From NCBI RefSeq assembly GCF_011386835.1, contig NC_088807.1, positions 25,916,001 to 25,980,000 on the forward strand: a stretch of DNA of 64,000 nucleotides. The letters are read 5' to 3'. A program made the translations under genes and the position numbers. The notes under the pieces were generated by a model that had not been told where the DNA came from, did not search any database, and saw nothing but the letters and a program-made list of their open reading frames with translations. This DNA comes from Chrysemys picta bellii. Taxonomy: Eukaryota. Position 1 is the stretch's first letter; each line of letters opens with the position of its first letter. This document shows, piece by piece, positions 1-14,500 of this stretch.

Positions 1-504
1 CATCTCTCTGTCTATCTCCCCCCATCTCTCCTTCTCAGAAGTGGTGCCTCCAGCCCGGCCGGGGAGGCCCCTTTCCTCCCGGCCCTATCCGCCCCCCGAT
101 CTCGCACGCAGCCCCCCAGCGGCCGCCAGGGCCTGGCCCCGCTGTGAACCCAGGAGTCCTGCCCCCCCACTCCCCTCCCCAGGGACTGAACCCAGGAGTC
201 CTGCCCCCCCACTCCCCTCCCCTCCGCAGGGACTGAACCCAGGAGTCCTGCCCCCACCCACTCCCCTCCGCAGGGACTGAACCCAGGAGTCCTGCCCCCC
301 CACTCCCCTTCCCTCCCCTCCCCTCCCCAGGGACTGAACCCAGGAGTCCTGGCTGCAGGGGCGGGGGGAAGAGGGTGGCGCAGTGCAGAGGAAGTCGGCA
401 CCATCTCAAAACTGATTTCAAAAGCTGCCCTTGCCTCATCCCTGCCAACGCAGCAGAGATGGGGCAGATAACACGGGGCGGGGGCAGCGAACTAACCACC
501 CCAC

Positions 505-975
505 AATGGAGGGGGGCAGGGAGCCTGGGTTCTCTCCAGCTCTGGGAGGGGAGGGGGTCGACTGGGGTTAGAACGGGGGGCTGGGAGCCAGGTCGCCTGG
601 GTTCTCTCCGGCTCTGGGAGGGGAGGGGGTCGACTGGGGTTAGAACGGGGGGCTGGGAGCCAGGTCGCCTGGGTTCTCTCCGGCTCTGGGAGGGGAGGGG
701 GGTCGACTGGGGTTAGAGCAGGGGGGCTGGGAGCCAGGTCGCCTGGGTTCTCTCCGGCTCTGGGAGGGGAGGGGGGTCGACTGGGGTTAGAGCAGGGGGG
801 CTGGGAGCCAGGTCGCCTGGGTTCTCTCCGGCTCTGGGAGGGGAGGGGGTCGACTGGGGTTAGAGCAGGGGGGCTGGGAGCCAGGTCGCCTGGGTTCTCT
901 CCGGCTCTGGGAGGGGAGGGGGTTGACTGGGGTTAGAGCAGGGGGCTGGGAGCCAGGTCGCCTGGGTTCTCTCCC
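505..975 (+). repeat. ~74-bp tRNA/SINE-head-derived tandem repeat array
   Basis: Unit: ggttagagcaggggggctgggagccagg(actc/tcgc)ctgggttctctccggctctgggagggg. Confidence 0.85.
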
Positions 976-1099
976 GGGCTCTACATAAAGGTCGGTCAGG
1001 GGGTGTATTTCCCCACCCCACTCTGTGCCCTGTTCTTCTCACGTTGTGAATTTTGTTGCTCTTTTAATCTCCTGTCCATTCGTAAATCACAATTCAACC

Positions 1100-2290
1100 C
1101 AGCCCTGCCACCACCACCGAACACACACTCCCAGCCCCCCCTCACCGCACAAATGCACCCCCTTCGCCGCTACTTAACCATCCCCACGGTGCCACCCCAC
1201 CATGATCAACACACACACAAACCACTGCCCCGAAACAACGCACAATCCCAGACCACGAGGACACACACCCAGCAGAGCTCAGCCTCGCCAGCAGGGGCAT
1301 CAGGGACGGACACGGACACACACACACACACACACACTCTACAAAGACAGGCAAAGAAATCCAGACTAAATCACAACTCCCTCCGCGACACACAAGCACT
1401 CTCCAAAATACCACACCCTAGAAAAACACACAAACACCCCACAAAGCCAACACTCAGCACCCCCAGAACAACAGACTCACATGTCGGACAACACACGCAG
1501 AGAAATACATCCCAAAAAAGCCCCCCCACCCAGCCACAACACGCTGCTAACCCACGGATACGGCACACACAAGCTAACAAGCCAACACAAACCCCTGCCA
1601 CACAAACAGCTAAGACATACACACCCACCAAACAACCACAACAGCCCACACAGACATGCCAAATCAACACAAACAACACATCAAGTCACAGCCACCGAAA
1701 CTATCGCCCGCCACATGAAACACACCGCACAGGCAGTCCCAAACAGCGCACCCTCCCCCGGCCCCCCCACCACAGCCCAAACCACACACAGCATAAACAA
1801 CACACACAAAAACACACAGATGCACCTTCAGTACTACAAAAACACAGCCCAGTCCCACACAAAGAGACACAACCCAGAAAGAGACACCCCTCAACACCAC
1901 TGCAAAGACACACAACCCAAACACACACCCCACCACATCCCGGAGACAGACACACAAAGACACACAACCCAAGGGGACATCCTCTCCCCACCACTACAAA
2001 GACAAACAACCCAACCACCATCACAACCCAAACCCCCTGAACACTACAAAAACACAGCCACACACACACACAACCCATGGGGAAACACCCTCAACACCAC
2101 CGCAAAGACAGACGCACAGCACCACAACCCGAATGTGCAACCAAAGGCACGCACCCTGAATGCGACAAAAACTCCACCCAAAGACACACACACAACCCCT
2201 CGACACCGCCGCAAAGACAGACACACCACCACAACCCAAAACCCACCCCCCATGACAGACACACTCCAAACTCCCCCTGCGCACCCCCCC
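1100..2290 (+). repeat. C/A-rich low-complexity region with imperfect acacacaa/caaagac units
   Basis: Strong depletion of G and T on the plus strand; (AC)n at ~1319-1337. Confidence 0.7.
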
Positions 2291-2420
2291 ATCACCCCCA
2301 CTTCCATCTCCTTGGGCCATTTTCACATCCAGCTCCAGGATGGCCCCTGCCCCCGATCTCTGCGTTGTGTGGGTGTGTACCAGGCCGGAGGGGGAGGAAA
2401 TCGGACGTGTGGGGCCCAAC

Positions 2421-2490
2421 GATTATACAGCCCTTATCGGGATTAGGGCCTCAGATAAGAAATAGCCGGGAGATAATTTTTATCTCCCTT
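2421..2490. promoter_or_regulatory. Cluster of four GATA motifs including a perfect inverted pair
   Basis: CTTATC 2433-2438, AGATAAG 2453-2459, and GGGAGATAA-ttt-TTATCTCCC 2468-2488. Confidence 0.6.
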
Positions 2491-2989
2491 GCCTTGACGG
2501 GCAGCTCACACGGCAGTCACAGATTTGCCCCGATGCGGCTCAGTGGGTAGAACAATGTGTATTGTAACCCCCCACCCACCCCAGAACGGGGATGACATCC
2601 CCTCGCCCCCCCCCACGATTTACCTCGCGAAGGCTTCGAAAGAACCCAGGCGTCCGGGAGGCTGAGAGGAGAGAACGGAAGGTAAATTGCTGATCCTCTG
2701 GGGTATTGCGCAGAGGAGTGGGGTCGGGGGGGGGGGGGGGAAGAGAAATGTCTCGAGATGGGGGTGGTCTCCCCCCCCCCCGGACTGGACGTTTCCAGAC
2801 AAGGGTTCCCCCCGATCCCCGCACGACCAGCCGGGGGGAACTCAAACGGGGGGTGGGAACCCCGACATTAACCTGCAACGGACCCGCTGGGACCTGCCAG
2901 TCTTCTCACCCCTTTTCCTCGTGCGATCCGTCCGTCTGCCCCGCCCCCCCACCCCGCCATCCGTCCCCCCACCACACCCCGCCATCCCC

Positions 2990-3680
2990 CACGCCCTATC
3001 CACCCATCTCCCCCCCGTGCCCCCTGGCACCCCCACCCCGCCATCCGCCCCCCTCACCCTCCTGTGCCCCCTGGCACCTCCACCCCCGCCATCTGCCCCA
3101 CCACCACCCTCCTGTGCCCCCTGGCACCCCCTGTGCCCCCTGTTCCCAGTGCCCCTGGCACCCCCGCCAGCCCTCCTCCGTTCCCAGTGCCCCCTGGCCC
3201 CCCGCACCAGCCCTCCTCCGTTCCCAGTGCCCCCTGGCCCTCCCCGCCAGCCCTCCATTCCCAGTGCCCCCTGGAAACCCCGCCAGCCCCCCTCCATTCC
3301 CAGTGCCCCCTGGCACCCCTGCCAGCCCTCCTCCGTTCCCAGTGCCCCCTGGCACCCCCCCACCAGCTCCCCTCCATTCCCAGTGCCCCCTGGCGCCCAT
3401 GCCAGCCCCCCTCTGTTCCCAGTGCCCCCTGGCGCCCCGCACCAGCCCTCCTCCATTCCCAGTACCCCCTGGCACCCCACACCAGCCCCCCATTCCCAAT
3501 GTCCCCAGCACCCCCGCCAGCCCTCTGTTCCTAATGCCCTCTGCCCCCCCCGCCAGCCCCCCTCCGTTCCCAGTGCCCCCTGGCGCCCGCGCCAGCCCCC
3601 CTCTGTTCCCAGTGCCCCTTGGCCCCCCCCGCCAGCCCTCCTCCGTTCCCACTGCCCCCTGGCGCCCGCGCCAGCCCTCC
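2990..3680 (+). repeat. ~39-bp C-rich minisatellite
   Basis: ccagccctcctccgttcccagtgccccctggcacccc units. Confidence 0.85.
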
Positions 3681-4544
3681 GTTTGCAGTTCCTCTGCACC
3701 CTTCCATCCCGTCCCGATTCGCTCTGCCCGTTGGCCTCTCTCCACAACTCCCCCAAACCGGACGCCACCCGTCCCCCGCCGGCCTCGGCTTGACACTCAC
3801 CTAGAGCTGGGCAAGAAATTTGGGGGGGCCCCCACATGCGGTGCCAGGTGGACCCTTGGCAAATTTCGAGGGGGGGTTTGAAGCACAGCGAGCTCCCCAG
3901 ATCTAGCCGGCCGTGGGTCCGCCCCAACTTGCTGGGTGGCTCCGAGAGACAGAGAACAGGAGGGGGGGGGGCAGAGACGCTAAAAATGACACAGCAGCCC
4001 AGGCTGGTGAGGTCCCGCCTTCTGAGACGGGACGGGCTCTCGTGGGGCACAGAGGGGGGGGAGAGAGCAGCTGGGGGTCTCCTGCCCCCCACCCTGGAGA
4101 ACTCAATTACCCCCCAATGTGCAGCAGAGAGAGAGACAACCAGCCCCCTAAACTCTCTCTAGTGTAGAAGGAGATGGGTCTAGTGGTTCGGGGGGCGGGA
4201 GGGGGGAGCCAGAACTCCTGGGTTGTCTCGGAGGGAAGTGGGGGTCTATTGGGTAGAGGGGAGGGGCTGGAAGCCAGGACTCCTGGGTTCTCTGGGAGGA
4301 GACTGGGCCTTAGGGGGCGGGGTGGGGGGGGCGCTGGGAGGCAGGACGCCCTATTCTCTGCCTGGCTCAGTGGGAGGAGGCAAGTAAACATTGGAGGGAG
4401 GGTTGGGAGTTTTGGGGTCTTGGTGCTGTACCCCCACGCTCGTCCAGGGGGAGGGGAGGCAGCGATGGATACATGGGGGGGACGGCAACTGGTCTATCAT
4501 CACTCAGCATTCCTAGAGATTTCACACGTGGGGCAGATCGCAGA

Positions 4545-4850
4545 TGGCGCCCCCCAGAGGGGACAGGCCCTGTGCCCCATTCCCCGCCCTCCCCGAGCCA
4601 GCCAGTCCCTGCCCTGAGGCCGGATGAGACCCGGTGCCCCCCCAGAGGGGACAGGCCCCAGCCCCACTCCCCACCCCCTGAGCCAGCCAGTCCCTGCCCT
4701 GGGGCCGGATGAGACCCGGTGCCCCCCAGAGGGGACAGGCCCCTGCCCCATTCCCCGCCCTCCCCGAGCCAGCCAGGCCCTGCCCTGGGGCCGGATGAGA
4801 CCCGGTGCCCCCCAGAGGAGACAGGCCCCAGCCCCATTCCCTGCCCCACT
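4545..4850 (+). repeat. ~85-bp repeat family (ccagaggggacaggcccc..gagccagccagtccctgccctgggg)
   Basis: Also at 11325-11530, 29160-29280, 29690-30435, 42480-42885 and, inverted, 38095-38200 in part and 51215-51650. Confidence 0.8.
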
Positions 4851-4895
4851 AACCGCCCGGCCAGTTTGGGGCCTGGGGAGGTGATGGCAGCAGGC

Positions 4896-4930
4896 CTGGA
4901 AGTCCCCGATAAGCCCTTATCTGATGCCAG
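4896..4930. promoter_or_regulatory. Palindromic double-GATA site with ETS core and CTG-N9-GATA composite
   Basis: CTG 4896-4898, GGAAGT 4898-4903, GATAAG 4908-4913, cc spacer, CTTATC 4916-4921. Confidence 0.6.
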
Positions 4931-5104
4931 GGTCAGGAGCTGGCGGTTGGCGGATTCTTGGTGACGGGGCCTGGAACAACCCACGCCATAGTGCTGGGCG
5001 GGCAGCGCAGGGGGCAAGGTGGGGAATAACAGTCCTGGGTGGGGGAGACGTCCCCAGGTCCCCCACTGCGTCTGGGGTGCGAGGGCCACAGTCTTCCTGG
5101 CCTG

Positions 5105-5420
5105 TTCACTCCCCTCCCTCTGCTAGTGTTCCAGAGCCGGGGAAAGAACCCAGGAGTCCTGGCTCCCAGCCCGCCCCCCCCCCTCTAACCGCTAGACCCC
5201 ACTCCCCTCCCAGAGCCGGGGAGAGAACCCAGGAGTCCTGGCTCCCAACCCTCCTCCCCGCTCTAACCCACCAGATCCCACTCCCCTCCCAGAGCCGGGG
5301 AGAGAACCCAGGAGTCCTGGCCCCCTGCTCTAACCACCAGCCCCCACTCCCCTCCCAGAGCCGGGGACAGAACCCAGGAGTCCTGGCCCCCAGCCCCCCT
5401 GCTCTAACCACTAGACCCCA
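5105..5420 (-). repeat. ~74-bp SINE-head repeat array
   Basis: agaacccaggagtcctggctcccagccccc..ctctaacc units. Confidence 0.85.
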
Positions 5421-5639
5421 CTGCGGCTGTAGCTGGGGGCGTCCCTGCGACACTGGCTGATAGAAACTGATGCAGATTCTGTGTCAGGATGAACCCCCTG
5501 GCCCTGCGCACAGGCCGGGGGGGTGAGTCTAACCCAGACTTCAGGGGAAGCCAGCGACCGATTCTCTGAAAAACACCCGCTTATCTCCCAGCGCCAGATA
5601 AAGGGGAAGGAGCTGAGCAAGAGAGAGAGATGAGTCCAA

Positions 5640-6440
5640 ACCCAGCCCCACGGTGCCCCTCACTCCCCACCCGCAGCCCCTGCCCTCCCCACCCTCCAAC
5701 CCAGCCCCGCAGTGCCCCTGACTCCCCACCCGCAGCCCCTGCCCTCCCCACCCTCCAACAGCCCCGCGGTGCCCCTCACTCCCCACCCGCAGCCCCTGCC
5801 CTCCCCACCCTCCAACCCAGCCCAGCGGTGCCCCTCACTCCTGACCCGCAGCCCCTGCCCTCCCCACCCTCCAACAGCCCCATGGTGCCCCTCACTCCTG
5901 ACCCGCAGCCCCTGCCCTCCCCACCCTCCAACCCAGCCCAGCGGTGCCCCTGACTCCCCACCCGCAGCCCCTGCCCTCCCCACCCTCCAACAGCCCCGTG
6001 GTGCCCCTCACTCCCGACCCGCAGCCCCTGCCCTCCCCACCCTCCAACCCAGCCCAGCGGTGCCCCTCACTCCCGACCCGCAGCCCCTGCCCTCCCCACC
6101 TTCCAACAGTCCCGTGGTGCCCCTCACTCCCGACCCGCAGCCCCTGCCCTCCCCACCCTCCAACAGCCCCGCGGTGCCCCTCACTCCCCACGCGCAGCCC
6201 CTGCCCTCCCCACCCTCCAACAGCCCCGCGGTGCCCCTCACTCCTGACCCGCAGCCCCTGCCCTCCCCACCCTGCAACCCATCCCCGTGGTGCCCCTCAC
6301 TCCCGACCCGCAGCCCCTGCCCTCCCCACCCTCCAACCCAGCCCCGCGGTGCCCCTCACTCCCCACCCGCAGCCCCTGCCCTCCCCACCCTCCAACAGCC
6401 CCGCGGTGCCCCTCACTCCCCACCCGCAGCCCCTGCAATT
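5640..6440 (+). repeat. ~56-59-bp minisatellite
   Basis: cagccccgcggtgcccctcactccccacccgcagcccctgccctccccaccctccaac units. Confidence 0.9.
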
Positions 6441-7249
6441 CCAGCCCTGGGACAGCTCTCTCAGCACTATAGATCCTTGAGCATCAAGCAGAGATCAGTG
6501 TCATTAGGTTAGTAAATACAGTAGGACCTACATTAAGCGCAGCAGGTTCATAACATAAGGCTTGTTGTAATAAGATTGTAATGGACCAGGCTGGGGGGAC
6601 CCTAATGCCCCCTGCTGGAGAGGAGAGGCTCTGAAAACTCCTCTGCGTGTCATGCTTCCTATACTGCTACCCAGTAGCGGAGAGTCTCCGTGCACTCACC
6701 CTCTTTCCCCGAGACGGAGCTCAGCTCCCGGATGATTCTAATCTCGCCCCTGGTTGTCCCGGTGCATCTCCACCCACACATCAGGCGACAACTTCCGGAT
6801 GCCACGGCCAATCCTTTCCAAATTTCCTGGGGACGCTCCGGGCACCGGCGGGCAGGAGTCTGTGGATTTGGGGAGGGGGAGGACATTAGAAAATGGGGGG
6901 ATACACGGGGAGCCCCCACCTGGCATCCGGTCAGCACAGCCCCAATTTTAGCACCTTGGCCATTGAGTGGAGATGAAAGAGCCCCCGGGGCATGAGGCAG
7001 AAAGTGACCCCGTCTCTAGGCCAGCTCCCCAAGGAAGCATAACCTGGGGACCCCTGGAACGACTGACCCCTCAGAGAAGGGTGGTGGAAATGGGGGGGGA
7101 GAACGGGGGACCCTGCTCTGGGGAGATGGGGGGGCACTCAGCTTAGAGGATTAGAGGGAGTCTGTGAATTAGAGGGGGTGGGGGGATGGAGGGGGGCACA
7201 GAGCCCCTGGGGGTGCAGTGAACTTGTCACGAACCACGAGACTGGCTAG

Positions 7250-7540
7250 AAAAGCCCCTTAGTCCATCTAGACCGACTTCCCGAATAGCCCAGGCTAGTG
7301 AATTTCACCGAGGGTCCTCCGCACCAAGCCCACGGACTTGGCTAAAGCCCCTTCCGGAAAGGATCCGGCCCGGATCTGACCCCACGGGAGTTGGGGAATC
7401 CACCACGTCCCTGGGCGGTTTGTTCCAAAGGCTCATTACCCGCGCCGGGAAATGTTGGGGCTGCGTTTCAGCTGGGCTCCTGCCTTTCGCAGGGAGATTA
7501 ATAACCTCGTTAGTACCTGGGATTCTCTCCCTGGGAAGGG
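7250..7540 (-). mobile_element. CR1-type LINE, 3' end of ORF2, degenerate
   Basis: Minus-strand translation FPARVMSLWNKPPRDVVDSPT resembles the CR1 ORF2 C-terminal RVVNxWNxLPxEVV motif. Confidence 0.6.
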
Positions 7541-7569
7541 GTTTATACATCCGAACCAAGCCAGTCCTT

Positions 7570-7790
7570 GATCGGTTGGGGTGTGGGCAGCACCCGGCCC
7601 GACGGGGGGGCCCTGTTCGCGGGCGGGGTGTGGGCAGCGCCCGGCCCGACGGGGGGGCCCTGATCGCGGGCGGGGTGTGGGCAGCGCCCGGCCCGACGGG
7701 GGGGGCCCTGATCGCGGGCGGGGTGTGGGCAGCGCCCGGCCCGACGGGGGGGCCCCTGATCGCGGGCGGGGTGTGGGCAGCGCCCGGAAT
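7570..7790 (+). repeat. ~47-bp GC-rich minisatellite, about 5 units
   Basis: ggggtgtgggcagcgcccggcccgacgggggggccctgatcgcgggc. Confidence 0.85.
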
Positions 7791-8589
7791 GACCAGACCC
7801 CGATCTCACAATCAAAGTTTACTGCGGAAACCTTAAACTATCTGGCATGTCCTCATTTCTTTTTTAAAATGTAACTAAGCTCTTTGCCTGGCCTTTCCTA
7901 GATTGTTTTATTTCCTTATTGACAGGGGAACAATTCTGCAGCTTACCGAGCTCTGCACGGGTCTGAGCTAGCAAGGGTGAGAGAGAAGGAAAGATTCTGC
8001 TCGGGGAACAGAGGGTGCACTGAAGGACGACACAATGACTGAAAGATCACTCGAAGGGAGGAGTTTCCACCCTCCTGGCTCCTTTTCTGGGGATCTCGGC
8101 TTCCCTGACTCCACCCTTTTCTGGCTCCCCAGGGCTCGGTCATTCTCTTCTCCATTTGCACCTTCTCCCCCCCACAAACCCGGGTCCAACTCCCGCCTCC
8201 ACTCCCGGATCGACCTCGCCAAGCTAAAATCCGGCCCTCTCCTGGCTGTCTAGGCAGCTCCTCGCCTCCCCCGCCACCCAACCCAGCTTGCCTGTTGCCA
8301 TCGACGCGGGCCTCCCTCCCACGTGCGGACTCCGTGCAAATCTTGTGGTTGCCGCCCGACGTCCTCAAGTTCTAGCTTTTCCTCTCCATTCAGCCAGCCG
8401 ACCGCTCTCCTCACCCCACCGCATTGTCCGTGCGATCTTGTCCAGAATGGGGGCCCCCCCGCCGAGATCCTCCTCTGAGCCCGTTTCTCTGTCCACGTTG
8501 CCCCTAAGAAGAGAAGCACAGCCACGCTGGGTCAGTCCAATCGCTAGCCCGGGGTCCTGTCTGCCGACAGCAGCCAACACCAGGTGCTT

Positions 8590-8750
8590 CGGAGGGAACG
8601 AAGAGTGACCCATCCCATCGCCCAGTCCCAGCTCCTGACAGGCAGAGGTTTAGGGACCCCCAGAGCATGGGGTAGCGGCCCTGGCCAATAGCCACTGATG
8701 GACCTATCTGCCATGAACGGATCTAGTGCCATTTCCAACCCTTGCAGCCC
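8590..8750 (-). mobile_element. CR1 LINE 3' fragment
   Basis: ccaatagccactgatggacctatc.ccatgaac on the plus strand; the same block occurs in the CR1 copy at 52010-52100. Confidence 0.55.
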
Positions 8751-8769
8751 CCCACTGACCCCCCCTTCT

Positions 8770-9880
8770 CTGGCACATCAAACATAAGGTGTTTGGACAA
8801 TGAGAAGGAGGTTTTTTTAACCACATGAGGAACACAAAGGATCCCAAGAATGGTATTAGTCCATTCCTTGATGCACATGGTAGACTTACCAATACTAGCA
8901 CAGAACAGGCAGACACGGTCAATAAATATTTCTGTTCTGCGTAAAAAAACCCACTCGGACGAGTGATGACAACACTTTTTCCATTCCACTAGTGCCTCTG
9001 GAGGACGCTACTAAAGTCAGACATTTTTACATCGTCAGGCCCAGAGACCTTCAATCCAAGAGTTTGAAGAGAGCTGGCCGAGGAGCTGGCAGTACTGTTA
9101 CTTGGAGCACTGGGGGAAGGTCAATGTGTAATAAATCTGCAATAAACCAAGGTGCCAATTTTTGAAAAAGGGTGAACGAGATGATCTGGGTAATTATAGA
9201 CCTGTCAGCCTGACATCCATCCTGGGCAAGATAATGGAGCGGCTGATACAGGACTCAATTAATGAAGAATTAAAAGAGAGTGACATAATTAATGCCAATC
9301 AACAGGGGTTTACGGAAAATAGATGCGGTCAAACTAACTTAGTATCTTTTTTTGACGAGATTACACGTTTGGTTGCTAAAGATGGCAGCGTTGATGTAAC
9401 AGGCAGACTTCGCTGAGGCGTTTGACCTGGTCCCGCGTGACACTGATTAAAAATTCACACAATGTAACATTAACACAACCCACATTAAATGCCTTAAAAA
9501 CTGGCTAACTGATAGATCTCGGAATGTAACTGTAAGCGGGGAATGATCCCCGAGTGGGTCTGTTTCCAGTGGGGTCCCCTGGAATCAGTTCTCTGACAGG
9601 CATTTTGATCAATGCCCTGGAAGAAAATATAAAATCATCCCTGATAAAGTTTGCAGATGGCTTAAAAATGGTGGGTAAATAATGCAGGGGGGCAGAGGTA
9701 CCGAGCCACCTGGACTGCCTGGGAACCCGGGCATAAGCAAACCATGTGGGGCTTAGTATGGCTAAATGTGCACGTATCCCGGTAGGAACAAGAACGCTGG
9801 CGGTGCTGAGCTTGGGGGCTCTGCCCTGCGAAGCAGCGACTCTTCGTGGCGAGGAATCTAGGACTGTATAAGGTCTCCGG
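8770..9880 (+). mobile_element. CR1-type LINE ORF2 reverse transcriptase fragment, frameshifted
   Basis: 9162-9416 encodes KKGERDDLGNYRPVSLTSILGKIMERLI..QQGF..CGQTNLVSFFDEIT, followed by DF..AFDLVP and KFAD remnants. AT-rich relative to its flanks. Confidence 0.9.
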
Positions 9881-10784
9881 CAGCCGATCTAGCCCCGTCG
9901 CTATCCGGATCTCCACTCCTGCCCCCGCCTCCAGCCTCCATCGTCCGCTGGTGTCTCTCCCCACTGAGCATCTTCGGGCTCGGGCGCACAGCCCCCCGTT
10001 CTCCGCCTCCTTTGCCGTGATGCCTCGGGAAAAAACCTAGGCGAGGGGAAGGCTACCGTGGCGTGGAGCTGGCTGCAATAGGGACTCGTTGTTCCCTTGC
10101 GGTACCCAGTCTGGACCCGCCCCAGGTCTCGTCTCAGACGGGAAGCTCTGCGGGCGCAGGGATTGTCTTTCTGTTACATGTTTGTACAGCGCCCGGCGCG
10201 GTGGGTCCTGGGCCATGGCTGGGGTGCCTAGGAGGTACCGTAATACACCTAATAGACACTGTACAGCGCCTGGCGCGGTGGGGTCCTGGGCCATGGCTCA
10301 GGTGCCTAGGAGGTACCGTAATACACCTAATAGACACTGTACAGCGCCTGGCGCAATGGGCCGTCACCCAGAGGGTGCTAACGAACGATGGAGAGAGATC
10401 ACGCTGCAGACGGGCGGGAGAAGGTGCTAATGAAAGACAGAACGAGGGTGACAGGCGGAGAGCGGGACAGCGAAAGACAGGGCCTGACAGTGACTGAAGG
10501 AAGGGAGACACGTGCGAGAGGAAGGAAGACGTGAAAGAGACATGAAGAATGAAAGCGCGCGAGAGCAGGACAGGCCAAGGAGCAGGAACGGAGGGAGACG
10601 AGGCCAGAGCAGGGCAGGAAAGTGAGGGCTCTTGTGCCCCCCACCCCCCCAGCAACGCCAGCACAGCCCAGAGGCGGGCACATGGCGACAGAGATAGCGC
10701 TATCTCCCGGCTCAGGCTGGGCGGCTGTCACCCGCCTGTCACTGCCGGGAGAACGGGCAAGTGAGGCAGAGCCAAAGACTGGAC

Positions 10785-11100
10785 CCAGGAGTCCTGGCTC
10801 CCAGCCCCCCTGCTCTAACCACTAGACCCCACTCCCCTCCCAGAGCCGGGAGAGAACCCAGGAGTCCTGGCTCCCAGCCCCCCAACTCTAACCCACTAGC
10901 CCCCAGTCCTCTGCCAGAGCCGGGTATAGAAACCAGGAGTCCGGGCTCCCAGCCCCCACTGCTCTAACCACTACACCCCACTCCCCTCCCAGAGCCAGGG
11001 AGAGAACCCAGGCGTCCGGGCTCCCAGACCACCCAGCTCTAACCCACCGGCCCCCGCTTCCCTCACAGAGGTGGGTGAGAACCCAGGAGTTCTGGCTCCC
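10785..11100 (-). repeat. ~74-bp SINE-head repeat array
   Basis: Same unit. Confidence 0.85.
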
Positions 11101-11543
11101 ACATACAGAACCAGACCAGGGGGTGGGGCAATTCCAGGAAAGGGGCCGGGAGTCAGTTCACAGTAAACGAAAGCCGTTTAATTACAAAACTCAGTGACAC
11201 CAGAGTCCAGAGAGCACCAGGAACCAGAGGGGGAGATGTTGGGGGGACGGACAGACTGGGGGTCCCTATTACAGGGACTATATAGGGGACTGGGGCCAAT
11301 CTTCACCCTCCACAGGGCTGGATCAGAGCCGGCGCCCCCCAAGAGGGGACAGGCCCCTGCCCCGTTCCCCGCCCCCTGAGCCAGCCAGTTCCCGCCCTGG
11401 GGCCGGGTGGGAGCCGGCGCCCCCTAGAGAAGACAGGCCCCTGCCCCATTCCCTGCCCCCCTGAGGCAGCCAGTCCCTGCCCTGGGGCCGGGTGGGAGCC
11501 GGCGCCCCCCAGAAGGGACAGGCCCCGTGTCCCATCTTCACCC

Positions 11544-14500
11544 TCACACCACATAAGGGGCCACCCATTCGGGGTCCACCACAGACTCTTCCACGGGCCG
11601 CTCGATGTGGAAGTTGCGCTGGTGCGGGGGTCCCTGCCGGGCCGTCCTGCCCCCCCGCTGGGGAATGGGTAGCTCCGAGTGGTGGGCGGGCAGCGGGGGG
11701 GTGAAGAAATAGGGATGCAGCAATGCCTGGGGAAGGGGAAAGAAAGGGTTAACCTGGTGACACAGCTGACCAACGGGAGAGCCTGGGGCACCCCCTGGTG
11801 GCATCTTGAGGTATTGCACTCCCCGCCCCACAGCAGCCTCGGCACCCAGCCCCGACTGCCAGGGGAGATTAGAGATGGAGGGAAGTGGGGTGCAGTGGGT
11901 TGGAGCAAGGGGGGGGGGCTGGGAGCCAGGACTCCTGGGTTCTCTCCGGGCACTGGGAGAGCAGTGGGGTTCCCTTACCTGGGCTGCCCTCACGCGCTCC
12001 CGGGAAGGGTAGACCAGGAAGCGCTCGAGCAGCTGCAGGGCCTGTGGGGGGGCGTCGGGCAGCACCTCCTCCAGCGGGATGGGCGGGTTGTCTTTGAACG
12101 AGATCTTGTTGTAGTCAGGCAGCTCCGTGATCTCCTGCCATGGGAGTCCTGGAGTCTCAGCACTGCCTGCTGCTCTAACCACCAGCCCCCACTCCCCTCC
12201 CAGAGCCGGGGAGAGAACCCAGGAGTCCTGGCTCCCAGCCCCCCCTGCTCTAACCACCAGCCCCCACTCCACTCCCAGAGCCGGGAGAGAACCCAGGAGT
12301 CCTGGCTCCCAGCCCCCTGCTCTAACCCACCAGCCCCCACTCCCCTCCCAGAGCCAGGGAGAGAACCCAGGAGTCCTGGCTCCCAGCCCCCCTGCTCTAA
12401 CTACCAGCCCCCACTCCCCTCCCACAGCCGGGGAGAGAACCCAGGAGTCCTGGCTCCCAGTCCCCCCTGCTCTAACCACCAGCCCCCACTCCCCTCCCAG
12501 AGCCAGGGAGAGAACCCAGGAGTCCTGGCTCCCAGTCCCCCCTGCTCTAACCACCAGCCCCCACTCCCCTCCCAGAGCCAGGGAGAGAACCCAGGAGTCC
12601 TGGCTCCCAGCCCCCCTGCTCTAACCACCAGCCCCCACTCCCCTCCCAGAGCAGGGGAGAGAACCCAGGAGTCCTGGCTCCCAGCCCCCCCTGCTCTAAC
12701 CACCAGCCCCCACCCCCTCCCAGAGCAGGGGAGAGAACCCAGGAGTCCTGGCTCCCAGCCCCCCTGTTCTACCCACTAGCCCCAGAGCTGGAAGAGAACC
12801 CCGGCCCCACTCACCGGCCAGACGCGCGGGCTGGGGGTCCCCAGCACCCGGAGTACACAGCAGAGCTGCTCGATGTCGTTCTCCCCGGGGAAGAGGGGCG
12901 AGTTGTTCAGCAGCTCAGCAAAAATGCAGCCCACAGCCCTGAAGCGGATGCAGAAAAGGGGGAGCAGGCCGGTGTGTGTGGGGGGGTCTATGGAACCCCA
13001 GGCATGACTCTCCATGACTGACCCCTATCCCACTGTGTCCCCGGGGTCCGCGGGGCCATCCTCACCGTCCTGAGGTGCCTCCGGGCAGCAAGGGGGGTGG
13101 GGGGGATCATTTAGGGCTCAGTCGTGGGCCCCACACACACACACGTACACACGAGAGACGCTGGACCTTCAGGATAAAAAAATAACAGGAGTTCCCGGGA
13201 CTCCCGCCTGGGGAGAGAAGCGTCAAAGCGCGACACCTGCCCGAAGAGCCGACGGCTCGCAGAAGTGCGAACTGCCTGAGTGTAACGGACACAGGGGCGC
13301 TGCCTGAGTCTGCAGAGAGCCTGAGCCGGATGCTTGTAGAAGTGAGACCTGCCCTATCACGTCTCTGCTGGGAGGTGTGGGAAGGGGCTGTGTGGGGGCT
13401 GAGACCCCCTCTAGGGCCACGCTCTGTGGTCTGGCTCCCTGTAAAGGGGCTTGGGCGGCATGATTATGTGGGGGGAGCATGGCTATGGGGCAGGACAAAA
13501 AGGGCAGGGCTAGGGCTGGATTAAGGAGGGAAGCTCCCTTGGCCAGACCCCTTCATTAAGTATGCAGTCGAATCCGGCCCCAGCAGAGATCTCTGCGTTC
13601 CGGACCCCCACATCAGCGGGGGGAGGGGATTCACGCTAACGAGCGGCTGTCCAGCCATAGCGGGGCTCGAGCATGGAGGGGAGACTAAAGATGGGGGGAT
13701 GAGGGGCCGGGGAGCTCACCACAAATCCACCCCTTCGTCATACTTCCGGGCACCGTACAGGAGCTCCGGGGCACGGTACCACCTAATGCGGAGACAGAGA
13801 GACGGTCACACACCTCCATACCCACCACTAGCATCTCCCTGCTCTATCCCACCAGCCCCCACTCCCCTCCCAGAGCCGGGAGAGAACCCAGGAGTCCTGG
13901 CACCCCGCCCTCCCTGCTCTAACCACCAGCCCCCACTCCCCTCCGAGTGCTGAGGAGAGAACCGAGGAGTCCTGGCTCCCAGTCCCCCCTGCTCTAACCA
14001 CTAGACCCCACTCCCCTCCCAGAGCTGAGGAGAGAACCCAGGAGTCCTGGCTCCCAGCCCCCTGCTCTAACCCACTAGCTCCCCACTCCCCTGCCAGAGC
14101 CGGGGAGAGAAGCCAGGAGCCCAATTCCTGGTCCCTGGCTCCGTGGATCGACCCGGTTCTGTGGCCAAAGGTTCCAGCCCAGACCCCGGCCACTCCCATT
14201 CACCTGGTGGCCACCTGGTGGCTGTAGAGCCGGCCTGCGTCACTGGAGAACACCCTGGCGAGGCCGAAATCCGCAATCTTCAGCTGCCCCGTAGAGCTGA
14301 TGAGTAAATTGGCTGGTTTCAGATCCTGCTGGGAACAATGAGTGGGTTAGAGCAGGCGGGGCTGGGAGTCCGGACTCCTGGGTTCTCTCCCCGGCTCTGG
14401 GAGGGGAGTGGGGGCTGGTGGTTAGAGCAGGCAGGGCTGGGAGTCCGGACGCCTGGGTTCTCTCCCCAGCTCTGGGAGGGGAGTGGGGCCTAGTGCTTAG

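Follow-up and report, generated by a model that had tools for sequence, protein, structure and literature searches.

The promoter of the GATA1 gene contains a double (palindromic) GATA site, known as dbGATA or GATApal in the mouse and chicken work. An avian palindromic site is known as well, and the title of Trainor et al. 1996 names vertebrate GATA-1 promoters. The mouse double GATA binds one GATA-1 molecule through both zinc fingers, with an affinity about seven times that for a single GATA site, is occupied in vivo, has been proposed to mediate positive autoregulation, is required for the eosinophil lineage and has a counterpart in the zebrafish promoter (PMC2193547). Mouse sequences were checked in this study against the Mus caroli GATA1 locus (L004, with its N runs retained), where the double GATA occupies positions -691..-671 from the last base of exon IE (the donor was read directly); deltadblGATA mice lack exactly this interval (PMC2193547). 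Another element to be compared is the distal haematopoietic enhancer G1HE/HS1, which in the mouse is located 3.3 kb farther upstream than the double GATA and combines one GATA motif with a full CAGCTG E-box. The mouse double-GATA string and the G1HE core string, both given in an earlier reading made from the DNA letters alone (the sequence-only reading), are present exactly in M. caroli (L004 4703-4731 and 1432-1446, respectively).

In this study, a 64-kb stretch of the Chrysemys picta bellii genome (the window) was analysed, and the 35-mer at its positions 4896-4930 is, with high probability, orthologous to the double GATA site of the GATA1 promoter. The sequence-only reading had proposed that it is the reptilian equivalent of an element upstream of Gata1, and this is borne out by synteny and by conservation in four turtles and the emu; of the likeness that it had seen to both mouse elements, the one to the promoter double GATA stands and the one to G1HE does not.

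Re-reading of the sequence confirmed the motif exactly as it had been described. On the plus strand it consists of CTG (a half E-box, 4896-4898), a nine-base spacer (4899-4907), GATAAG (4908-4913), a CC spacer (4914-4915), CTTATC (4916-4921) and TGATGCC (4922-4928), with an ETS-like GGAAGT (4898-4903) overlapping the end of CTG. On the minus strand, positions 4925-4916 read ATCAGATAAG, i.e. a complete WGATAR motif and an adjacent partial GAT, which together form the pseudo-palindrome ATC-W-GATA-R; the second, inverted GATA (CTTATC in gene orientation) follows 2 nt from the first. In gene orientation, which is the minus strand of the window, the site is therefore ATC-A-GATAAG-GG-CTTATC. The first GATA on the plus strand is preceded by C, so this half-site is CGATAAG and departs from the WGATAR consensus. 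The GATAAG..CTTATC pair has its sole copy in the 64-kb window, and a search for GATAAGNNCTTATC with at most one mismatch gave 1 match, against a mean of 0.01 in 100 dinucleotide shuffles. The site is located within a non-repetitive island of about 280 bp, flanked on one side by an 86-bp tandem repeat (4549-4846) and on the other by SINE fragments (5131-5391). Tight GATA clusters occur besides at 2433-2485 and 5581-5601, the former being the other cluster from which the site had correctly been placed 2.4 kb away.

The gene order in the window, established from conserved exon motifs, is CDK20(-), TIMM17B(-), PQBP1(+), SLC35A2(-), PIM2(-) and OTUD5(-), and a TIMM17B read-through ORF and the CDK20 ORF match turtle proteins. 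The C. picta bellii CDK20 locus (GCA_011386835.2, CM062334.1) is 100% identical to window positions 1544-27276. Neither an ORF encoding a GATA zinc finger nor, in tblastn searches with turtle GATA1, any GATA1 coding exon was found within the 64 kb. In Dermochelys, Carettochelys and emu, CDK20, GATA1 and HDAC6 follow one another in this order on a single strand, and the GATA1 > HDAC6 order was also seen in Emydura. The 90% cluster of turtle CDK20 proteins includes genuine GATA1 proteins, as well as an 842-aa Caretta gene model that fuses CDK20 to GATA1 (P0247). From this synteny and from the 5' exons described below, GATA1 is placed on the minus strand, directly adjoining the window on its left, and the region of about 2.3-11.5 kb is assigned to the 5' part of the gene; this is the position and orientation of GATA1 that the sequence-only reading had asked for as a check. 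In the turtles and the emu, TIMM17B, CDK20, GATA1 and HDAC6 are all on one strand. None of HDAC6, ERAS and PCSK1N is present between GATA1 and TIMM17B in the turtle and emu loci, and the GATA1-HDAC6 pair of these animals is, as we take it, inverted with respect to the human arrangement.

The 5' exons of GATA1 were mapped piecewise by tblastn rather than as a joined spliced protein model, and the N-terminal extensions of RefSeq GATA1 proteins were assigned to five places in the window, all on the minus strand. The most relevant is an alternative 5' exon at 3976-3800 (an IE-like candidate, donor CTCTAG/GTGAGT), which joins coding exon 2 in RefSeq models and was matched with 98% identity over 59 residues (tblastn, Chrysemys GATA1 X1, P0421); at the peptide level, Chelonia GATA1 X1 (P0250) starts with a similar sequence ahead of exon 2. 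A second alternative 5' exon is located at 2838-2623 (donor GCGAG/GTAAAT), to which peptides ending in ...PGRLGSFEAFAR from Malaclemys GATA1 (P0410) and from the Caretta CDK20-GATA1 fusion (P0247) were mapped, and another lies at 2394-2310 (tblastn). Each of these three exons is joined to coding exon 2 in some model. A promoter double GATA is expected within about 0.5-0.7 kb of the haematopoietic first exon. Measured on the gene models, the 3976-3800 exon has its mapped 5' end 0.9 kb and its donor 1.1 kb away from the turtle site, and the 2838-2623 exon follows 2.1-2.3 kb downstream, so that the site precedes two candidate first exons at these distances. The CDK20 > GATA1 > HDAC6 synteny together with the minus-strand 5' exons therefore puts the site in the 5' flank of GATA1, where its orientation to transcription is that of the mouse element. 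The remaining two places, 8613-8292 and 6862-6701 (both by tblastn), are upstream exons taken from an older Chrysemys GATA1 X1 model and from the Caretta CDK20-GATA1 fusion, and could represent CDK20 read-through or, comparably to the mouse testis exon, an alternative first exon located distally. Also in the CDK20-GATA1 intergenic region, an ORF on the plus strand (9162-9416) may encode part of a CR1-type reverse transcriptase, to judge by its appearance.

Comparison between species was based on Chrysemys, Dermochelys, Carettochelys, Emydura, emu and Mus caroli. In all six, the pattern ATC-W-GATAAG-N1-2-YTTATC is present in one copy upstream of GATA1 and in gene orientation, the chance expectation being about 1e-5 per 10 kb by our own estimate. 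The ten bases ATCAGATAAG are invariant in the four turtles and the emu, while the mouse has ATCTGATAAG, and the inverted GATA is separated from them by 2 nt in the turtles and the emu and by a single nucleotide in the mouse. The double GATA was not found in the Varanus locus, of which 33 kb were searched; the orthologous position is occupied in the four turtles, the emu and M. caroli. The sequence, position, orientation and conservation of the turtle site are in this respect matters of observation.

The conserved block around the double GATA extends over 4840-4975 (minus strand) and includes CCAACCGCC (4950-4942), which precedes the ATC by 17 nt. When the four turtles were aligned, invariant columns were most frequent over 4944-4885, where their share reached 0.83-0.90; in the flanks it is mostly 0.1-0.6, the exception being a SINE fragment. 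When the 12 kb of turtle sequence were compared with 10.6 kb upstream of emu GATA1, the collinear chain contained a single HSP, corresponding to window positions 4950-4904. With the core removed, the 5' flanks of Emydura and emu were more similar than all shuffled controls (0/500 reached their score), which gives alignment support to the orthology with birds; the Chrysemys-emu flanks, treated in the same way, were marginal against shuffles. The turtle-mouse flanks without the core were at chance level against shuffles, and ungapped BLAST of turtle against mouse gave no significant HSP. The AGTCC and TG.TGCC flank matches of the sequence-only reading were therefore set aside. The mouse match is clearest when the turtle sequence is read along the gene, on the minus strand, and is confined to the core; orthology to mouse rests on the layout of that core, its orientation, copy number and position.

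Two observations on the surrounding sequence may be added. In turtles, emu and mouse alike, the double GATA is preceded at a distance of approximately 15-17 nt by the motif CCAACNGCC, which fits the relaxed Myb consensus YAACNG (window 4950-4942; emu L007 ~9163-9171; M. caroli L004 ~4683-4691). The emu GATA1 5' region (L007 9060-10000) is dense with GACCCAGGCGTCCGGG repeats, and the same motif is present in the turtle exon at 2640-2660.

The element might be real and conserved but serve a neighbouring gene (CDK20, HDAC6 or the plus-strand ORF at 5489-7966), or might have lost its function in turtles, although we consider this very unlikely. The site is 6.6 kb from the 3' end of CDK20 and an annotated gene starts head-to-head with it, 560 bp away, which would speak for such an assignment; against it, the position and orientation of the site relative to GATA1 are kept even in the mouse, in whose GATA1 locus CDK20 was not called, and the 315-aa product of the head-to-head gene has no Pfam match and is mostly a proline-rich tandem repeat. 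The repeat unit is 57 bp long (5643-6436), and since it accounts for most of the product, the gene model at 5489-7966 is probably spurious. The start of this model is also head-to-head with a conserved block at 5530-5650.

This block is of importance for another explanation, namely that the 4896-4930 site is the turtle equivalent of G1HE/HS1, a GATA and E-box element recruiting GATA1 and TAL1, which appears very unlikely. The spacing CTG-N9-GATA resembles the composite motif, CCCTTATCT-G-ATGCC on the plus strand can be compared with CCCTTATCTATGCC in the mouse G1HE core, and the site is 2.1-2.3 kb from the 2838-2623 exon; in mouse G1HE, too, GATA and a CTG-containing element are about 9-10 nt apart. 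However, mouse G1HE has one GATA and the full CAGCTG, while the turtle site has CTG only, with two and a half GATA motifs in the promoter-type layout (ATC, GATA and inverted GATA) and in the same gene orientation, and the G1HE-like sequence is on the strand opposite to the gene. Moreover, the spacing to the downstream GATA palindrome matches that of the mouse double GATA, and a separate, more conserved block with a canonical CTG-N8-AGATAA lies 650 bp further upstream. The block in question (5530-5650, minus strand) was recognized in the turtle comparison and carries two GATA motifs; Chrysemys and Dermochelys differ by 1 indel in its 103 nt (against a background identity of about 80%), and it is well kept in Emydura and Carettochelys. 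It contains TTTATCTGGCGCTGGGAGATAAG, the sole CTG-N8-AGATAA composite in window positions 1-12000. No significant similarity to mouse G1HE was detected in the block; judged by its motifs and conservation, it is a better candidate for a turtle distal enhancer than the double-GATA site.

That the motif is a chance combination of GATA sequences or part of a repeat family, as might be thought in a region rich in tandem repeats and SINE fragments where short motifs are common, is contradicted by the conservation data and hardly credible, given the single copy in the window against 0.01 expected, the invariance from Pleurodira to Emydidae and the presence in the emu at the orthologous place.

With the 4896-4930 element read as the promoter double GATA, its accessory motifs can be considered. 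The consensus of the TAL1/GATA1 composite is CTG[N7-8]WGATA (PMC4702602). In gene orientation, CAG is kept at the same offset in 4/4 turtles. Seen from the opposite strand, the turtle sequence reads CTG-N8-C-GATAAG, the emu sequence CTG-N8-TGATAAA and that of M. caroli CTG-N7-AGATAAG; the emu (N8, T) and M. caroli (N7, A) therefore fit the consensus fully, while the turtles keep the N8 spacing but have C at the W position. Of the composite that the sequence-only reading had recognized, the spacing is thus present and conserved in turtles and the W position deviates; the turtle CTG is suggestive of a TAL1/GATA1 half E-box. The ETS site fared less well: GGAAGT is present at 4898-4903, but among turtles it is shared only by Chrysemys and Dermochelys (Carettochelys has GGGAGT and Emydura GGGAGC), and it is absent from the emu and mouse sites. 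An ETS GGAA/T core under selection was thus not found, and the motif is probably incidental.

It may be speculated, with considerable doubt, that the promoter double GATA is an amniote-wide composite of GATA and a half E-box. The mouse, the emu and the four turtles all have a half E-box at CTG-N7/8 spacing from the inverted GATA; on this reading, the whole GATA1 control region of turtles would be compressed, with a second, near-invariant block that bears a composite only 650 bp upstream. If true, recruitment of the TAL1 complex would be ancestral to the autoregulatory promoter site, besides the distal enhancer.

Downstream of the site, the four-GATA cluster (2433-2485, minus strand) lies beyond the 3976-3800 and 2838-2623 exons and just 5' of the 2394-2310 exon. 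Its core, GGAGATAAAAATTATCTC, is identical at 16/18 positions to a palindrome in intron 1 of M. caroli Gata1 (L004 6839-6857); Dermochelys has kept this core, and Carettochelys has kept it less exactly. As far as these motifs allow a comparison, the cluster is a likely candidate for the counterpart of the mouse intron-1 GATA repeats. In mouse intron 1, the palindrome GGAGATAAANNTTATCTC follows the double GATA at 2.1 kb, and in the turtles that keep the core (Chrysemys, Dermochelys and, less exactly, Carettochelys) it lies 1.7-3.0 kb downstream; this shared landmark further supports the correspondence of the site's position with that in the mouse.

Binding and regulatory function of the site in turtles we infer from the mouse element, which has been tested. 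By this analogy, the turtle site would be bound with high affinity by a single GATA factor, the C-finger contacting AGATAAG and the N-finger the neighbouring partial GAT, and the second, inverted GATA together with the half E-box could bring in a second GATA molecule or contacts with a TAL1 complex. High-affinity occupancy would then sustain transcription of GATA1 once it is on, providing positive autoregulation in haematopoietic cells.

Work on the autoregulatory double GATA of GATA1 has dealt with mouse, chicken and zebrafish; in turtles, the core of this site, its orientation and its location are retained. Its conservation to turtles spans more than 200 million years, and the site has been kept although the surrounding gene order differs from that of mammals. 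For the painted turtle, whose GATA1 is poorly assembled, it constitutes a fixed landmark for genome annotation, and the candidate control elements that it marks form a compact set in an animal whose red cells are nucleated.

The element is well studied elsewhere, and its turtle ortholog, not previously noted in that lineage, was to be expected and introduces no new mechanism. Like the mouse dbGATA, it consists of ATC-W-GATAAG and, behind it, an inverted CTTATC, has the same orientation to transcription and is present as a single copy upstream of a haematopoietic first exon (in the turtle, a candidate exon); both sites also have a half E-box at the composite distance from their inverted half and a further GATA palindrome approximately 2 kb downstream. 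It differs from the mouse element in a spacer of 2 nt instead of 1, in W being A and not T, in the inverted half being CGATAAG and not AGATAAG, in flanks that are not alignable and in the distance to the donor, which is about 1.1 kb in the turtle (nearest candidate first exon, from gene models) and 0.69 kb in the mouse. The emu site, situated between CDK20 and GATA1, shares with the turtle ATCAGATAAG, the 2-nt spacer, the inverted GATA, the CCAACCGCC flank and the CAG 9 nt downstream. It has TTTATC where the turtle has CTTATC, and the CDK20-GATA1 intergenic region around it measures only 1.7 kb, compared with about 7.6 kb for Chrysemys when counted as far as the 3976-3800 exon.
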